64,000 nt of DNA, from the sequence record NC_061450.1. One strand, given 5' to 3'. The stretch's first letter is position 1, and each line of letters begins with the position of its first letter. Of this stretch, positions 14,514-58,665 are shown one piece after another. A program made the position numbers and the translations under genes. The notes beneath the pieces were generated by a model. That model was not told the origin of the DNA, ran no database searches, and was given only the letters and a program-made list of their open reading frames with translations.

Positions 14514-17500
14514 TTATTTTGAGATATAACCAGCAACCGCCTGTTTGATGGCTTTGCGACTGATGATAATCTTTTTCTTCGGCTTGTCTGCCAGAGCAGC
14601 TTTGGCTTTCTTGGCCTTCTCCTCGGCTTCGAATTCCTCATACTTGGCTGTATTGTCAGGCAGTTCCTTTTTCCACTGCTTGATGTTCTTCTCATCTGCT
14701 TTGGTCAAAGGATTGGTCTTGCTGCGACTTCTGATCTTAATGTCGTTTGCCCAGAGTTGCTTCTTCATCCAGTCTGACATAAGATGATACTGGTCCTGCA
14801 TAATGCTGTCCAGCATCTTGTCAACGTCTAGGTCTTTCTCACCCAACTCGTCACGCTTCTGTTCAAGTCCAGCACGCAGGATTTTGTTGAGGCTGTTGTA
14901 GGAGAAGTCCCAACCTTTCACATCTTTCTCTGAGGCACCGATTTCAAAATCGATCTCAGGTACGGAAGTGAACTCAAAGTTGTGGCGCTCTTTAACAACC
15001 TGAACTACCGCTGTGGTCATTGCACGTTCAATCATGTCGAGTGCGAGGAAGAACCATTCGTACTTACAGTCCACGGTCAAGCTATCGTGTACCGATACGT
15101 TGAGCAGGAAGTCAGGATATACACCGTTTGCTTTCCAGTAGTCATACTTCATGCGATCAAGGATTCTGATTGCACTCATCATCAGGTCTGAACCAAAGCC
15201 CTGAACTGGACTGTTTACCGCACGACGGTCACAGGCAGCATGTACTTGATCTGCTTCACGATGCGACTTAGGCACCATGTAGCCCCACAGGTGACGACGA
15301 CGACCCACTGGAGATTCGACAAAGTAGTTCTCATGTGCAAAGCGCTTGATGGATTCAAACCATTTGAGTCCTGTTGGGAATCGCTTAAGGAACTTCGCTT
15401 TGATATCAGCGATCTCATCAACTTCACGTCCCGTTGACTTGGCGAGACCCTTGTCACCCTGCTGGTAAATCAGGCCGAAGATTACAGTTTTAACCGCGTT
15501 CCTGATCGGCTTGGTGACTTCCATAATCGGTACGCCGAAGAAGTAACTGGCGTTGATTTTGTGAACATCACCCTCAATATCAACAAGGTGGTGAATCCAA
15601 GGATCAGGAACAGTGCGATAACGGTGGCGCAGACGACGACCAACTTCAAACACTTCTGCAACTTCTGAGTCTCCACTGATAATCGACCAACCTCGGACTT
15701 CGTGTGCCGAGTAGTCGACCTTGATTAGCATACGGCCTGGACGAGCAATCAGGATACGTTTGATCAGCTTGCCCATTTCACTACGCGATGGTACCTGCTG
15801 CAAGTTGGGATCAGACGCTGAGGTACGACCCGTTACAACTCCTAAGTAGCCGTAGCTTGGTCTGATCGCACGGTCATGCTTGAAGTCCTCACTCTCACCC
15901 CAGAGTCTCAGCAGGCTGTTAACATAGGCGTTCTTTAGCTTTTGCGCTTTGCCCAGCTTGTTGTACAAGGCAATCAGAGGCACATCTTTATAGGCCTCTT
16001 GGAAGTCTTTATCCAGCTTGCCTGCCGCTTTACCGTTGTCGCGTTTCTTGGCACCTTCTTTGAGTGGTTTGAGTTTCATCACATCAAAGAACAGAATCTG
16101 CTTGTGCTCCTGCTTGGACAGATCAAACTTGTTGACGTTGACCTTGCCCATTAGACCAAACGCAGGCACATCGTCCGTGGCACAAATCTCTTTGTTGGCG
16201 CGCCTGACCTCAGGACTATCCATGAACTCACGCTCTACGTTGCGCAGTTCTTCGTTGATCTGACTGTTAGGCAGATTGAGTTTAAACAGGTAATCAATGT
16301 CTGCCATTGCACCTGTTGTTTCCATGATACTAAACGCATGTATCTGGTCACTAATCTGCTCACTGACCATAGACCGATACTTCTTGTAGTGAATGTCTTT
16401 GGCACGGCGTACCTGTTGCTCTTGAATCAAGAACGGAACGATAACGTCAAGTCCAGCATACTCCTGCACGTCTTCGTCAAGGTCAACTTCGGCAATTGTC
16501 GCACGTTGCTCTTTACCAAACGCTACGTCAAAGTAAACAGTTGTGCCATACTGCATCGCAAGGTTCGCCAAGCCATAGTAACCATAGCCAGTAACAGACT
16601 GTAGGTTCTTTGCATTCTCATCATTGGCGAACTCACCTGCTTGAATATCCCACACGTTGGCTGCATAGCTACGAATGCCGAAGTTAGAGCGCAATACGTT
16701 AAGGTCAAACTTTGCGTTGGTATAGATCTGGTACTTGTTCTGATTGTCCTCAAAGTAATCACGCATCGCCTCTTCAATCTGGCGAAGTTCTTTGGGACTA
16801 AACGGACTGTCGCGGTGATAGATTGGAATCACGTAAGCAGTCTTGCCGTCATCCGAGAGCTGTACCGTCTGCAATCTGTTTTTGATTCGGTTCAGGTTCT
16901 CGGTTTCTGTATCGACTGCGACCTTCTTGGACTTCTTCAAACGACGCAACAACTTGACCACGTCTTTGACTTGAGTCAGATACACCAGCTTCCAGTTACG
17001 CTTCTTGCCGCACGTTACCTTTGGTATTTTGTACGGCATGCCTTTCTGCAACAGTGGCAGCATCCAGCGCGACATATAGCCCAGAGTATAACTGGTGCCT
17101 ACGATGTTGCGTGGGTTGAGCACGTTGTTGTAGCTGACGTTTGGCACATGGATAAACTCATGTTTACCACGCTTGGTCTTGAGCTTGGTAGGGATCTCAA
17201 CACCAAACCAATGATGGTACATGCCGCCTGAGTAGTCAATGCGTTCGCTGTTCAGAGCACGGAACGGCTGCGTGCCAAACGTCATAACATAGTCAGGCTT
17301 GTAGTCGAGAATCAGATCACGAATACGTTGAGCAAACACCTCATTGGCATCTGTTTTGTACTGCTCAGACTTTTCATAAGTCTTGAACATGTTGTAACTG
17401 ACGACCATGAAGTTCCAATCGTCAATCGTGGTCTTGAGGGGGAAGGTGTCTTCCAGATACTGCATCTGGTTGAGGAACACTTCACCCGTGGTGCCACTAA

Positions 17501-17672
17501 ACATCTTACCGTTTTCTAAATCTTCGGAAGGCATGTGGTCCACAACGAACAACACCTTGCCACCCTTGTTTGTCTTGCTAACGCCTTTGAGGACGCGTAC
17601 ATAATCATAGCTCTGGACGTCACTGAATGCGTCCGGTAGCTGAAAGTCAATCGCCAAATGTTTAGTCTTCAC
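14514..17672 (-). CDS. polA: Family A DNA polymerase with N-terminal UDG-like domain and 3'-5' exonuclease
   Basis: 1052 aa; ExoI VDTET, ExoII NAKFD, ExoIII YAGLD; TGRTSASDPNLQQVP; motif A DYSAHEVR; motif B RNAVKTVIFGLIY; PVQG; motif C VHDS; N-terminal VLFVVDHMP...GKMFSGTTG and KPDYVMTFG resemble the family 4 UDG fold. Confidence 0.93.
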   Translation of the reverse strand: MKTKHLAIDFQLPDAFSDVQSYDYVRVLKGVSKTNKGGKVLFVVDHMPSEDLENGKMFSGTTGEVFLNQMQYLEDTFPLKTTIDDWNFMVVSYNMFKTYEKSEQYKTDANEVFAQRIRDLILDYKPDYVMTFGTQPFRALNSERIDYSGGMYHHWFGVEIPTKLKTKRGKHEFIHVPNVSYNNVLNPRNIVGTSYTLGYMSRWMLPLLQKGMPYKIPKVTCGKKRNWKLVYLTQVKDVVKLLRRLKKSKKVAVDTETENLNRIKNRLQTVQLSDDGKTAYVIPIYHRDSPFSPKELRQIEEAMRDYFEDNQNKYQIYTNAKFDLNVLRSNFGIRSYAANVWDIQAGEFANDENAKNLQSVTGYGYYGLANLAMQYGTTVYFDVAFGKEQRATIAEVDLDEDVQEYAGLDVIVPFLIQEQQVRRAKDIHYKKYRSMVSEQISDQIHAFSIMETTGAMADIDYLFKLNLPNSQINEELRNVEREFMDSPEVRRANKEICATDDVPAFGLMGKVNVNKFDLSKQEHKQILFFDVMKLKPLKEGAKKRDNGKAAGKLDKDFQEAYKDVPLIALYNKLGKAQKLKNAYVNSLLRLWGESEDFKHDRAIRPSYGYLGVVTGRTSASDPNLQQVPSRSEMGKLIKRILIARPGRMLIKVDYSAHEVRGWSIISGDSEVAEVFEVGRRLRHRYRTVPDPWIHHLVDIEGDVHKINASYFFGVPIMEVTKPIRNAVKTVIFGLIYQQGDKGLAKSTGREVDEIADIKAKFLKRFPTGLKWFESIKRFAHENYFVESPVGRRRHLWGYMVPKSHREADQVHAACDRRAVNSPVQGFGSDLMMSAIRILDRMKYDYWKANGVYPDFLLNVSVHDSLTVDCKYEWFFLALDMIERAMTTAVVQVVKERHNFEFTSVPEIDFEIGASEKDVKGWDFSYNSLNKILRAGLEQKRDELGEKDLDVDKMLDSIMQDQYHLMSDWMKKQLWANDIKIRSRSKTNPLTKADEKNIKQWKKELPDNTAKYEEFEAEEKAKKAKAALADKPKKKIIISRKAIKQAVAGYISK

Positions 17673-55172: not shown

Positions 55173-55466
55173 CTATTGAGGATCGTCAGGAAGATTTAGA
55201 ATAGCATCCAGATCAAGACCGTGTAGACCATGGCCTTCAGGAAACGGATCATGTTTGACATACTGAAAATTGGGACTGTAGTAGGCAAAGCTGTTGCGTG
55301 CTACGTTCTGCGTCTCGCGCTTACCTGCTGCCTGCTTGTTAGCCACGTGGCGATCAATGCGTGCCTTGCGCGGGTCAGGCTTTTTGTCCAGGTCGTCAAA
55401 AATACCAACGACACGACAACGACGGTAGTTCGGATGAACGCTGATATGTTTGACGGTTGCTGTCAT
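55173..55466 (-). CDS. Hypothetical protein
   Basis: 97 aa, ATGA-coupled to the TnpB-lobe gene. Confidence 0.6.
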   Translation of the reverse strand: MTATVKHISVHPNYRRCRVVGIFDDLDKKPDPRKARIDRHVANKQAAGKRETQNVARNSFAYYSPNFQYVKHDPFPEGHGLHGLDLDAILNLPDDPQ

Positions 55467-56497
55467 TTATACTTCCCCTTAACGGAGTAGATAAGACCTT
55501 CTTTACGCATGACAATAAGGTATTTGGCCTTGCGGTCAGAATTGATCTCACCACGAATCACATTGCTGATGTGGATTTTCTTTGCGTCACCAACACTGAG
55601 CGCTGTATTGGATTCAACAAAGCTAAAGCCAGAATCAGAGACAGATAAGGTATTGTTTTTTGCATCCGGGTTTAGTTTATCCGGACGACTACCTTGCTTG
55701 TTGGTATTGTCGGACCAACGTTGCCAATGGGCTGCACAAGAAGTCAAAGCACGACTAACAAGGCTGCGAGGGATTTTCAGGCCATGCTTTAAGTAAGCTG
55801 ATCGCAGCTCCGTGATATAGGTGCTGGTCGGCAATGGAGCTTCTTTGCTTTTCTGCTTAGGGAATCGATTGATTGTATATGCCCACCAATGATTGTAAGC
55901 ATCAACCTTGATAGCAATATACTTCTCAAGGATTGCAGCCTGTTCCAAAGTACACTCGATTTCAAATTCAAATGCTTTTGGATCGTCTTTGTCGCGGAGC
56001 TTGATTTCATTCTGCTCTGCAAGCCAGACCTTCTTGTTCATAAATCGAACGCAGTTAATCCAAGAGTACAGGAAAGAAACCTTGGACGAGTCTTTTGGAG
56101 GAACATCACCAAACAACTCCACCAGCAACGGAATGGCAAAACCAAAATCAATCTTTTGCTGAATGAACAACAGTTTGATGTCGGCATCGGTAAGATTGGT
56201 TCCAGCACGATAGGAATCAAAGAACTTTTTAGTTCTGCCATAACTAGCCAACAAGTCAGCAGGCATTACGTCCAATTCCTTGGAGGTATATTCCTTATCA
56301 ATCAAGATCGACAAAGCCTGAGCGATTGAAATCTCAGGCCAGGTACGATAGTCTTCTAATGGAAATTTTCTGCGATGATGCTCATACAGATAAAGGAAAT
56401 CCCCGATGCGGGAATAACGCGACTCAATATCTGCGAGGTTGTCGCTCTGGCTTGACACCCGGTCTGCGGTTTTCGCGGGGCGCTCTGTCTTCGCCAT
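55463..56497 (-). CDS. Protein with unknown N-terminal domain fused to a TnpB/IS605-OrfB-like REC-WED lobe, no RuvC
   Basis: aa 174-344: KAFEFEIECTLEQAAILEK...AYN (HTH_OrfB_IS605-like), YITELRS, KIPRSLVSRALTSCAAHWQRW, GSRPDKL, then WED-like strands; stop before any RuvC Asp. Confidence 0.55.
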   Translation of the reverse strand: MAKTERPAKTADRVSSQSDNLADIESRYSRIGDFLYLYEHHRRKFPLEDYRTWPEISIAQALSILIDKEYTSKELDVMPADLLASYGRTKKFFDSYRAGTNLTDADIKLLFIQQKIDFGFAIPLLVELFGDVPPKDSSKVSFLYSWINCVRFMNKKVWLAEQNEIKLRDKDDPKAFEFEIECTLEQAAILEKYIAIKVDAYNHWWAYTINRFPKQKSKEAPLPTSTYITELRSAYLKHGLKIPRSLVSRALTSCAAHWQRWSDNTNKQGSRPDKLNPDAKNNTLSVSDSGFSFVESNTALSVGDAKKIHISNVIRGEINSDRKAKYLIVMRKEGLIYSVKGKYK

Positions 56498-56505
56498 AGG
56501 TCCTC

Positions 56506-58179
56506 TCAGTGTTTTTCGGTGTAGTATTTGATATACGCACTATTTACAGTTTCTTGCTGATCACGAGAAACCTTCTTACTTGTGATACAACGTCGGTCAC
56601 TGCTAAACGTATGGCCATTCTCCCACACCTTCTTGAAAAGAAGCACCGAATCGGTATCGTCGTAGAAAGGCTTTACATCCATTGGGATGACGTTGTTGTA
56701 CTCACCTAGTATGGAGGCACCATCAAATTCAGCGCTGCACCAAAGGTTGGTAGCAATCACAGAAAGCAGTTGACGAGATTCGGTCCCCTGAAGAAAATGA
56801 CTCAACACAGAGTAACGTTCCCGTTTGAACTTGGAGACGCCAACACGCTGCACACAGCCCATGTCATTTTTAAAATGATACACACCATCAGGGCAACGAG
56901 TTTTTGAGGCAATGGTTGTCAGCAAAGTTTCAATCGATTTACTGATCTCCTTGTGCAGACTTTTCCAGTTGCGCCAAATGTCCATCACAAACTTTCTATG
57001 CAACTGCTTAGTTTCGTTGTTGTCCACTCCTTCAATTTTCTTCAACTTGGCACGTACCTTGCTGTCGCGCCAAAGACTTTCAAACAGAGGTGTTCTGTAA
57101 GGAATCAAAGATTGCTTGTCGTGGTCGAATACGATAATGATAGGAACGTTGTTCCAGCCTTTGAAAATCCCACCAAAGTTAAGTTGCTTGGCAGTCTCGC
57201 GAGTTATGCCTAAGATTTTGGCAAGCTCCGTGTGACTAAGCTGGATTTTCTCAGGAAAAGGTACTTCGTATTTGATGAACAACTCTTTGAGGATTGTAAC
57301 CTGAGCCTGAGGCATGTCGTAGTTTGAGGCGTAGTCGTGATCAAAGCACAGGTGTTTTACCACACGGAGCAAGGCCTGACTATTGCCAAACATCCTGCTG
57401 CCCACTTCGTTTATCCTGTAGCTATCGTAAAACTCAACTATCCTATCACCAGGAACTCCGCCCACTACCTTCATTTTAAGATTGCAGATCTGCTCCAGCA
57501 CAACCCACAGTCTCTGATAGCTGCTCTTTTTACCTTTCGCCGATAAATTTCTCAGGCAGTCCATCATACGGTCCAAATAAAAGCGATAGGGCCTTTGATT
57601 CTCCCACGCCTGCTTGATTAGTTGCTCAAGCTCCTTGTTGCCCCGACGCATGTGTTTAGCATCAGGACGACGGAATTTTGGCTTTTTGATCTCCGCCACA
57701 ATACTTTTTTCGACAATTCCTGCAATAGACGGAGCTTTCGCCTTGCGTCGCCTGCGGACCGTAATGTCATACAGGGGCTCATCTATGATAAAGGCCTTGC
57801 GAAATGCCCGTAGGAAGCTTGGCTTGAACTGCCATTCGCGGCTAAGACCTAAAATTTTGCTGTGTTTTGTGACAATTAAGGTTTTCTCCAACCACTCCTG
57901 AACAGCAACCGATTTATGGTAGTGCATGGCATATCTGGCGGGATTCCCCCTTTGATTGAACCACGACCACGCCATAGGGATTTGACCCTTGTCGCTGCGG
58001 CTGGTTAACCCTGTGCGTTCTGCAAGGTGCAGGAATAAGAAACCAAGACTCTCTCTAAACTTTGTTGCATCGGCCCCTTGAGGTACTGGGCACTTATCTA
58101 TGGTCTGATCCCAAAACAGCCTGTGGACAGACAGAGGAACAAGACGCGTTCCACGGTAAGTGATTTTCTTCATCAACAC
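56506..58179 (-). CDS. Compact family-A-like polymerase (TV-Pol-like), no exonuclease, possible N-terminal wHTH
   Basis: GSRMFGNSQAL (motif 2), NYDMPQAQVTIL (motif A, D288), RETAKQLNFGGIF (motif B, R327/K331), FLQGTES, SAEFDGA (motif C, D486); 557 aa. Confidence 0.7.
   Translation of the reverse strand: MLMKKITYRGTRLVPLSVHRLFWDQTIDKCPVPQGADATKFRESLGFLFLHLAERTGLTSRSDKGQIPMAWSWFNQRGNPARYAMHYHKSVAVQEWLEKTLIVTKHSKILGLSREWQFKPSFLRAFRKAFIIDEPLYDITVRRRRKAKAPSIAGIVEKSIVAEIKKPKFRRPDAKHMRRGNKELEQLIKQAWENQRPYRFYLDRMMDCLRNLSAKGKKSSYQRLWVVLEQICNLKMKVVGGVPGDRIVEFYDSYRINEVGSRMFGNSQALLRVVKHLCFDHDYASNYDMPQAQVTILKELFIKYEVPFPEKIQLSHTELAKILGITRETAKQLNFGGIFKGWNNVPIIIVFDHDKQSLIPYRTPLFESLWRDSKVRAKLKKIEGVDNNETKQLHRKFVMDIWRNWKSLHKEISKSIETLLTTIASKTRCPDGVYHFKNDMGCVQRVGVSKFKRERYSVLSHFLQGTESRQLLSVIATNLWCSAEFDGASILGEYNNVIPMDVKPFYDDTDSVLLFKKVWENGHTFSSDRRCITSKKVSRDQQETVNSAYIKYYTEKH
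56541..56549 (-). promoter_or_regulatory. Putative phage promoter motif CTGTAAATA
   Basis: 44 nt upstream of the start at 56497 (inside the 3' end of the upstream CDS). Confidence 0.5.
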
Positions 58180-58203
58180 TCGCTTTTGTACTTCGATGCC
58201 AGT

Positions 58204-58212
58204 TATTTACAA
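58204..58212 (-). promoter_or_regulatory. Promoter motif variant TTGTAAATA
   Basis: 25 nt upstream of the polymerase-like gene. Confidence 0.5.
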
Positions 58213-58665
58213 ATTCCTTTGCGTTCGCTGGCTTTTCTTCGGAGCATGGACATGAAAGGCTTATAAAATCTCTGGGTACGTCTATAAAACAAGAATATCC
58301 TCTATACCAACATGGGATCAGAGGCAGATAACACGATGAATGAGACAGTTAGGGTCTCATGATTTTAGCGATATTTTTCGGCTAGATCTGGTCTATGGCA
58401 CACCGTAGGCAGGTCACTAGGCGCGGTATGGACGCCATAGGTCGATCCCGTCAATAGCACCCAAAAACCGTACATTAGAGGGCTATTTCGAACAGTGAGC
58501 TTCATAGGTCGCCCAGGAGCGAAATCTGTGGAGGTCGAAAAGTGCCGTCCTCAAGGAATTACGCCCAGGGCATCCGTAGACACCCTATAGGCGCTTCCTC
58601 TGCTGGTCAAAAATTTCTAATCCAAGATTTTCAGACGAATCTCAGAGATTTTTACCCGCCATAGA
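58213..58665. other. Long non-coding region with long-range inverted repeats (origin or ncRNA candidate)
   Basis: AAAATCTCTG (58265-58274) / CAGAGATTTT (58643-58652); GTCTATGGC (58391-58399) / GCCATAGAC (58658-58666); ATGAGAC hairpin at 58340-58360. Confidence 0.4.

Follow-up and report, generated by a model that had tools for sequence, protein, structure and literature searches.

The locus and its genes

The window analyzed here, a stretch of 64,000 nucleotides of sequence record NC_061450.1, comes (at 100% identity) from Erwinia phage pEa_SNUABM_5, a 267-kb jumbo phage of the genus Rivsvirus whose host is the fire-blight bacterium. Its gene pEaSNUABM5_00224, the subject of this work, encodes a protein of 344 amino acids (aa) that carries at its C terminus a lobe very probably homologous to the recognition lobe of TnpB, the transposon nuclease from which Cas12 descends, and nothing of the nuclease lobe of that enzyme. 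The features of the locus are collected in Table 1. The gene is found among genes of replication and recombination (primase, exonucleases, a RuvC-family resolvase, a clamp-loader subunit, and SbcC), in a single copy per phage genome and at a syntenic position that is constant in all relatives. Its stop codon overlaps the start of the next open reading frame (ORF), leaving it without a 3' untranslated region (UTR). Directly upstream is a 557-aa polymerase-like gene, from which it is separated by 7 to 9 nucleotides (nt), or with which it overlaps, in the Erwinia phages; in the Dickeya phages the spacing is 37 nt.

An initial annotation of this DNA had described the ORF as a TnpB recognition lobe without its nuclease, placed behind an unknown N-terminal domain and domesticated rather than decaying, with a motif of its own and no tnpA nearby. 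Both the ORF and the observation are real, since the gene is conserved, and homologs covering its full length occur in 15 phage isolates as well as in metagenomic contigs. All of the strings quoted at the time (KAFEFEIECTLEQAAILEK..YN, YITELRS, KIPRSLVSRALTSCAAHWQRW, and GSRPDKL) are present from residue 174 on, and the protein ends 171 residues later. The motif CTGTAAATA is indeed there, in the 3' end of the upstream ORF, and has 11 copies in the window where 0.39 would be expected; Pfam scans of the ORFs on both sides of the gene detected no transposase family, in line with the reported lack of tnpA. Searches with the 344-aa protein gave no meaningful match in Pfam, PHROGs, NCBIfam, PADLOC, or the PDB sequences; a match to MCM_C (E value of 0.046) was judged to be due to chance.

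Table 1. Coordinates of the features discussed (positions in the window, except those with an L number, which refer to the contigs compared)
Feature	Coordinates	Strand	Remarks
Whole ORF pEaSNUABM5_00224	55463..56497	-	344 aa plus stop; ATG start; GenBank "hypothetical protein"
N-terminal domain, aa 1-173	55979..56497	-	Predicted helical, low confidence; no known family
C-terminal TnpB-like recognition lobe (WED-REC-WED), aa 174-344	55466..55978	-	Isoelectric point (pI) 9.6; net charge +10
WED strand beta-1, aa 175-181	55955..55975	-	FEFEIEC; counterpart of TnpB first strand
REC-like helical insert, aa 184-263	55709..55948	-	Long helices 184-211, 225-238, 244-263
WED strands beta-2 to beta-7, aa 283-343	55469..55651	-	Protein ends right after last strand
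Shine-Dalgarno-like sequence GAGAGGA	56501..56507	-	Overlaps TGA stop of upstream gene; read directly
Promoter-like CTGTAAATA	56541..56549	-	Core TGTAAATA begins 51 nt upstream of the ATG of the 344-aa gene
Upstream partner gene, 557 aa	56506..58179	-	GenBank "putative helicase"; phrog_30690, unknown function
Intergenic region of the exchanged cassette, ~490 nt	58180..58665	-	TGTAAATA at 58204-58211
CTGTAAATA/TGTAAATA sites	3176, 9249, 14279, 17714, 27305, 32683, 34691, 46785, 49744, 50152, 56541, 58204	-	
CTGTAAATA/TGTAAATA site	61445	+	
Two cassette versions compared	L004:1864-4950 vs L108:489-3572		Y3/pEp_SNUABM_52 pair
Two cassette versions compared	L008:909-3950 vs L104:5503-8085		AD1/pEa_SNUABM_18 pair
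Gene of the 174-aa protein (164 aa in pEa_SNUABM_32)	L104:7528-8052, L105:7509-8033, L106:7513-8037, L108:2501-3025, L109:2501-3025, L110:3480-3974		

A recognition lobe of the TnpB type

In ISDra2 TnpB, the WED domain (residues 1-12 and 117-176) forms a seven-stranded barrel, the REC domain (residues 13-116) is inserted after its first strand, and RuvC begins at residue 185 (PMC10097598). The lobe of the phage protein has the order and size of elements published for this recognition lobe (PMC10097598). An AlphaFold2 (AF2) model of the 344-aa protein, built on nine family members, folds aa 174-344 into one strand, three long helices, and six further strands, mostly with pLDDT values of 80-91 and with lower values (67-68 and 75-77) in three blocks of 10 residues. 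The top Foldseek match in the PDB was ISDra2 TnpB (8exa_A; E value of 8.3e-5, probability of 1.0, 179 columns, root mean square deviation of 3.8), and the TM score to 8ex9_A, an ISDra2 TnpB structure in which only WED and REC are resolved, was 0.70 when normalized to the target. Next came Cas12f, ISFba1 TnpB, Fanzor2, Cas12n, dCas12f, TranC, and Cas12k, and the first 37 PDB matches were without exception (37/37) TnpB, Cas12f/n/k/h/m, Fanzor2, or TranC. In BFVD, TnpB/Fanzor "transposases" from giant viruses and from a Campylobacter phage ranked after the members of the family itself. The REC-like insert holds the invariant or nearly invariant residues Q186, A187, Y193, T229, R232, and P243-R244-S245-L246, and the lobe is basic in most family members (net charge of +6 to +12, pI of 9.5-9.8).

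At the sequence level, the bridge to TnpB is P0009 (533 aa; L018:3297-4898), the most distant member of the family, found with the family profile among 1.84 billion proteins at an E value of 4.5e-5. The stretch of P0009 matched by the profile takes in the first ~85 residues of the lobe, with strand 1 and the REC helices, and the same stretch matches both the Pfam family PF12323, HTH_OrfB_IS605 (E value of 2.1e-4; 21.1 bits for a cutoff of 21), and the N termini of four PADLOC Cas12f/Cas12u models (E values of 3e-5 to 1e-3). P0009 is a positional ortholog, as its contig has a homolog of the 557-aa upstream gene (E value of 5e-13) and also a copy, 43% identical, of the peptidase-like gene that lies downstream in the window. 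Neither the 344-aa protein nor its 10 close relatives matched PF12323 in Pfam. The likeness to HTH_OrfB_IS605 that the initial annotation had in mind went undetected in the protein itself and lies at the cutoff in its distant ortholog.

Plain HMMER (phmmer and hmmsearch) retrieved no TnpB or Cas12 from the PDB sequences, whether the query was the single protein or a profile of the full length or of the C domain; hence, the claim of homology is based on the fold, the bridging sequence, and a profile-profile match. For the latter, an IS609-type TnpB profile was made from 30 sequences of genome contigs, since a homolog search with InsQ returned only near-identical Escherichia coli copies; the identity range of these loci (59-100%) limits the sensitivity of hhalign. 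The 14-sequence alignment of the C-terminal domain, compared with the first 204 columns of this profile, gave one collinear alignment of 156 columns, in which query columns 4-167 correspond to InsQ residues 5-164 (P of 0.003, probability of 10%). The score, 26.2, exceeded those of 100/100 column-shuffled decoys (maximum of 20.3, with at most 73 columns) and that of the reversed profile. By this alignment, the phage protein ends at approximately InsQ residue 166, about 15 residues before the RuvC-I motif, which agrees with the proposal that the nuclease was lost at the domain boundary. The sequence-level support is weaker than the structural support, yet independent of it. Considering the fold, the bridging ortholog, and the profile-profile match, we have little doubt that aa 174-344 are homologous to the recognition lobe of TnpB, and the structural match expected from the initial annotation was obtained with AF2 and Foldseek.

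The domain in front of the lobe (aa 1-173) has no known family, as had been suggested, and is conserved across the relatives, with the motifs LYE, RTWP, IPL, and YxW. Its AF2 model is helical and poor (pLDDT of 33-69). The second half of the domain is also conserved in P0009, whose N-terminal region (380 aa) is twice that of the 344-aa protein. The 174-aa protein of sister phages described below was considered as an equivalent of this domain and rejected, the hhalign comparison not being significant.

Missing nuclease lobe and search for transposon and guide-RNA features

Of the two lobes of TnpB, only the recognition lobe has been kept; both parts of the nuclease lobe, RuvC and the zinc-finger TNB domain, are missing. 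No Pfam match to RuvC (OrfB_IS605, PF01385) or to the TNB zinc ribbon (PF07282) was found in the protein or its relatives, and a hidden Markov model (HMM) of IS609 TnpB detected nothing in the window, although this is a test of low sensitivity. The ORFs downstream (97, 49, 222, and 169 aa) gave no family matches. As candidates for the missing NUC lobe, the 97-, 222-, and 169-aa proteins were rejected (hhalign alignments of 15-19 columns, P of 0.06-0.5), as was the standalone RuvC-family resolvase encoded ~4.5 kb away, which matches a true resolvase family. No Rfam match was obtained in the window at the gathering score, nor in the 5.5 kb around the gene at an E value of 1. Since, in addition, there is no 3' UTR and synonymous divergence (dS) is not depressed in the 3' half of the gene, nothing suggests an omega-RNA embedded there, although a novel RNA might be encoded elsewhere.

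Family distribution and selection

A tblastn search recovered full-length homologs with 25-34% identity in 15 phage isolates, among them Yoloswag, pEp_SNUABM_52, pEa_SNUABM_7/14/16/18/21/28/35/36, and the Dickeya phages JA11/13/29/33. Two further metagenomic relatives (68% and 45% identity) came from a word-index homolog search of 5.8 billion proteins, which returned 3 proteins only. An exhaustive HMMER scan of 1.84 billion representative proteins gave seven family proteins in all, indicating that the family is narrow. Scans of IMG/VR retrieved family members only, and a region search with the C terminus of P0009 nothing but P0009 itself.

All members can be aligned over their whole length and have a common end, ...V.G(K/Q)Y, followed by up to about 20 residues. 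None of the 14 or more homologs has a RuvC continuation; all stop at the same last WED strand. This full-length conservation with the same end point is maintained at 25-69% identity across five phage genera and metagenomes, and pairwise dN/dS values range from 0.06 to 0.25, with similar values in the N- and C-terminal halves. The conservation over the whole length, the common end, and these dN/dS values effectively exclude a recent truncation or a decaying remnant. The initial annotation had contemplated purifying selection and domestication, as opposed to a simple recent truncation or decay, and this is borne out: selection acts on both halves, no relative runs on into RuvC, and the end point and synteny are constant. 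In a clade of jumbo phages of Erwinia and Dickeya, the gene has become a fixed part of the replication/recombination module.

The polymerase-like gene upstream

The 557-aa protein is probably a cryptic polymerase of the right-hand type that belongs to the PolA/T7 superfamily and lacks an exonuclease domain, and the "helicase" label of its ORF looks wrong. In an alignment with seven homologs, it has invariant residues whose order and spacing are those of the family-A polymerase motifs. Motif A reads N-x-D-M-x-x-x-Q, with an invariant Asp; motif B consists of a basic residue and then A/T-K-x-x-x-F/Y-x-x-x-F/Y, with an invariant Lys; and a QGxE after motif B precedes motif C, (H/F)-D-G-A. Position 293 is occupied by an invariant Gln, where family-A DNA polymerases have the steric-gate Glu. 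Among the PDB sequences, the profile of this protein found Pol gamma at motif B only, and weakly (E values of 0.18-1.3). The first 37 Foldseek matches of its AF2 model (mean pLDDT of 63.6) are all family-A DNA polymerases or mitochondrial RNA polymerase. A canonical family-A DNA polymerase of 1052 aa, with a 3'-5' exonuclease domain, is encoded at positions 14514-17672 (- strand); pEa_SNUABM_5 would thus code for two PolA-superfamily proteins.

An exchangeable cassette

An alternative version of the locus is found in AD1, Y3, pEa_SNUABM_1/2/13/33/34/45/46, phB78, 2910A, and Yersinia phage fHe-Yen9-02. In these phages, a polymerase-like gene that is only 22-27% identical is followed by the gene of a 174-aa protein. 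Y3 and pEp_SNUABM_52 are assigned to the same species and share 94-100% identity in the genes that flank the locus. Between their polymerase-like genes the identity is 27%, and no alignment is possible for the partner genes. In blastn comparisons, homology has its breakpoints where the gene upstream of the cassette ends and where the gene following the partner starts, and the same pattern is seen between AD1 and pEa_SNUABM_18, which belong to the same genus and have flanks that are 81-91% identical. Because the breakpoints are located at the edges of the cassette, the intergenic region, the polymerase-like gene, and the partner gene have been swapped as a whole, and this exchange is the best available argument for the two proteins working together.

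The 174-aa protein has weak collinear hhalign matches to helix 1 of the lobe (P of 0.01, 24 columns) and to InsQ residues 77-134 (P of 0.0065, 57 columns, 33% identity). Judging from these alignments, the TnpB lobe may have been reduced even further in this protein. In pEa_SNUABM_32, the partner slot contains two small genes (167 and 164 aa), the second of which is the counterpart of the 174-aa protein.

Promoter-like motif and intergenic region

In the 12 relatives examined (12/12), the TnpB-lobe gene is preceded, at a distance of 41-51 nt from its start, by TGTAAATA, usually as CTGTAAATA. The motif encodes Thr-Val-Asn within the polymerase-like ORF in the Erwinia group, and in the Dickeya group it spans the stop codon of that ORF. 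Since the reading-frame context differs, it is the DNA motif, and not the peptide, that is conserved. The window has 11-13 copies of CTGTAAATA/TGTAAATA against 0.4-1.4 expected (about 10-30 times more), located 25-70 nt upstream of starts. From this enrichment and placement, the motif, which we take to resemble the T4 late promoter TATAAATA, probably represents a phage promoter class. A phage sigma factor has been reported for this phage group in the PaBG paper (PMC7412058).

The intergenic region of the cassette contains several islands that are kept in the closest relatives, GAGATTCGTCTGAAAATCTTGGATTA (~58621-58646), a GAGAC...GTCTC hairpin, and TTGGTATAGAGGAT. These islands were rejected as a universal cognate element, since the Alexandravirus and Dickeya phages that have the gene lack them. 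The RNA folding z-score of the region (58180-58665) is modest (-1.9). The region may be regulatory, an origin, or a small RNA.

Proposed role and alternative explanations

The 344-aa protein is a domesticated derivative of the TnpB/Cas12 type in which the recognition lobe stands behind a family-specific helical N-terminal domain. In TnpB, the cleft between WED and REC binds the duplex of the transposon-associated motif (TAM), the lobe and RuvC line the channel for the guide-target hybrid, and the omega-RNA scaffold sits on WED and RuvC (PMC10097598). A lobe without RuvC would keep the duplex-reading cleft and just half of the RNA-holding surface. We propose, at what we regard as an even chance, that the domesticated lobe is a non-cutting nucleic-acid-binding subunit serving the adjacent polymerase-like enzyme. 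Here we infer the binding, the substrate, and the partnership, the latter from gene linkage alone (adjacency and co-replacement). The lobe would position the 557-aa enzyme on a DNA site, a primer-template, or an RNA-DNA hybrid, and the N-terminal domain could be the adaptor that contacts this partner. Such a model would not need an RNA guide, and none was found. More tentatively, a cryptic single-subunit polymerase might have captured the TnpB lobe to serve it as a targeting or substrate-holding subunit, with the cis region, polymerase, and lobe making up the exchangeable module. A lobe captured in this way could recognize a duplex site, or stabilize an R-loop or RNA-DNA hybrid that the polymerase extends or transcribes.

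Several observations speak against a polymerase subunit derived from TnpB. Co-exchange of two adjacent genes can come from linkage alone, and loci of host interaction or anti-defence, too, typically have allelic cassettes in near-identical phages. The TnpB-lobe gene has its own promoter-like motif, so that independent expression is also possible, and in the contig of P0009 two small ORFs (143 and 208 aa) part the gene pair. As for the 557-aa protein, the best Foldseek E value is 0.015 (none below 0.01), with probabilities of up to 0.94, and the mean pLDDT of its model is the 63.6 given above. The 344-aa protein itself is without a significant match in any sequence library, and its homology to TnpB is built on an AF2 model from a 9-sequence alignment, one bridging ortholog, and an hhalign match with a probability of 10%.

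A regulator that binds DNA by itself in a sequence-specific manner (as an origin or transcription factor), reading a TAM-like motif in phage or host DNA and having no tie to the polymerase, would also suit a basic lobe encoded in a replication module behind a conserved promoter-like motif of its own, particularly as the TAM duplex of TnpB is read entirely by residues of WED and REC (PMC10097598). However, the two genes are tightly spaced and were exchanged as a unit with the intergenic region, with breakpoints at the edges, and no repeated candidate site was identified besides the general promoter motif; we consider such a regulator rather unlikely. The exchange itself can be read in another way, as two very different cassette alleles between flanks that are 94-100% identical are a pattern common at anti-defence loci. 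The cassette would then serve host interaction or counter-defence under diversifying selection, for example as a decoy or inhibitor of guided or DNA-sensing host systems. This is unlikely for a locus that is present in every relative, in a fixed place among replication genes, and under strong purifying selection within a type; moreover, PADLOC gave no match for the 344-aa protein, and modular exchange is equally classical for replication modules. It is slightly harder still to argue that the protein is RNA guided, with a phage small RNA held by WED (for instance, one from the intergenic region) directing it, and perhaps the polymerase, to DNA. The omega-RNA scaffold and the heteroduplex channel of TnpB need RuvC, which is absent here (PMC10097598), and to this are added the lack of any Rfam match even at an E value of 1, the lack of a 3' UTR, the undepressed dS of the 3' half, and the absence of the intergenic islands from Alexandravirus and Dickeya phages that carry the gene. 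What recommends RNA guidance is the descent from an RNA-guided enzyme and an intergenic region that travels with the cassette, with its conserved islands and folding z-score of -1.9.

Two further explanations question the origin or the state of the lobe. If an OB-like barrel with a helical insert had arisen independently, or if the AF2 model were misleading, the protein would not be homologous to TnpB; the HMMER profiles of the family, which find no TnpB or Cas12 in the PDB, the 10% probability of hhalign, and the 9-sequence folding alignment are compatible with this. We think it very unlikely, given that the first 37 Foldseek PDB matches all belong to the TnpB/Cas12 clan, that REC is inserted at the same point, after beta-1, that five independent TnpB/Cas12 HMMs match P0009 at their N termini, and that the hhalign score beats the decoys. 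Phages do carry TnpB elements, as seen in the BFVD matches, and the gene could in principle be the decaying remnant of a phage-borne IS605/IS607 tnpB. The full-length conservation at 25-69% identity with the same end point, the dN/dS of 0.06-0.25, and the conserved promoter-like motif make this extremely improbable, and no RuvC remnant was found downstream in tests of limited sensitivity.

Comparison with known systems and significance

The closest relatives of the protein are TnpB and Cas12f by fold and the nuclease-dead TnpBs (TldR, sigma-E-associated dCas12f, and Cas12k) by life-style. With TnpB (ISDra2 8exa/8ex9/8h1j and E. coli IS609 InsQ) it shares WED strand 1, the REC helices, the six WED strands, the approximate size of the lobe (171 aa in the phage versus 176 aa), a similar N-terminal strand-helix motif, and an alignment that is collinear up to the WED/RuvC linker. 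Unlike TnpB, it has no RuvC, TNB zinc finger, or C-terminal domain and has an extra N-terminal domain of 173 aa; its gene is immobile and syntenic, and no tnpA, insertion sequence (IS) ends, or omega-RNA were detected at the phage locus. In TldR, sigma-E-associated dCas12f, Cas12k, and Cas12m, a TnpB/Cas12 scaffold is likewise found in a non-cutting role and fixed beside a partner gene. However, all of these exaptations (among them the flagellin-, oppF-, and sigma-E-associated ones) keep the RuvC scaffold and have lost at most RuvC-III and the catalytic residues (PMC10691335). They also keep the guide RNA, whereas the phage protein is without the NUC lobe and no guide RNA is evident. The distinction from TldR made in the initial annotation is therefore correct, as there is no RuvC scaffold in the protein or its relatives (PMC10691335). 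In the Cas12f dimer, chains of the second protomer in which only the REC lobe is ordered (7wju_B and 8dzj_B, ~200 residues) match the model with TM scores of 0.53-0.55 and illustrate that a recognition lobe is able to act as a nucleic-acid-binding unit, although each Cas12f protomer is a complete nuclease and carries a zinc finger in this lobe, and the phage protein has neither. The 344-aa protein is best called a TnpB-derived recognition-lobe protein, being neither TnpB proper nor TldR.

Accessory subunits of polymerases have been exapted from other folds; with these there is only a functional analogy and no relation in sequence or fold, the interaction in the phage being deduced from linkage alone. 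Pol gamma B derives from an aminoacyl-tRNA-synthetase fold, and thioredoxin was recruited as an accessory subunit of T7 DNA polymerase. The split polymerase of a chimallivirus is reported to have a clamp-derived subunit (PMC13648687).

In the full-text literature searched for RuvC-less TnpB derivatives, for TnpB in jumbo phages, and for PF12323 in phages, no account of such a protein turned up, which is not proof of novelty. The known afterlives of TnpB in this literature (Cas12 effectors, Cas12k in CRISPR-associated transposons [CAST], Cas12m, TldR, sigma-E-linked dCas12f, and Fanzor) keep the bilobed body. The overall reading of the initial annotation, a TnpB recognition lobe without nuclease that has been domesticated, is supported by the fold, the selection, and the common end point, and a domesticated lone lobe would be a new architectural form of TnpB exaptation.

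A lone recognition lobe under strong selection shows that this half of TnpB is a functional unit in its own right, and provides a natural module of ~170 aa for the study of minimal DNA/RNA recognition. Being linked to a second, unannotated polymerase, probably of the family-A type, the lobe also points to unexplored replication or transcription biology in jumbo phages, and the existence of two interchangeable cassette versions in near-identical phages makes the function directly testable. If the lobe does act as a polymerase subunit, this would be the first case of a TnpB exaptation in which the nuclease lobe has been given up entirely, and the TnpB/Cas12 lineage would be tied to the synthesis of nucleic acids instead of to their cleavage or to repression.

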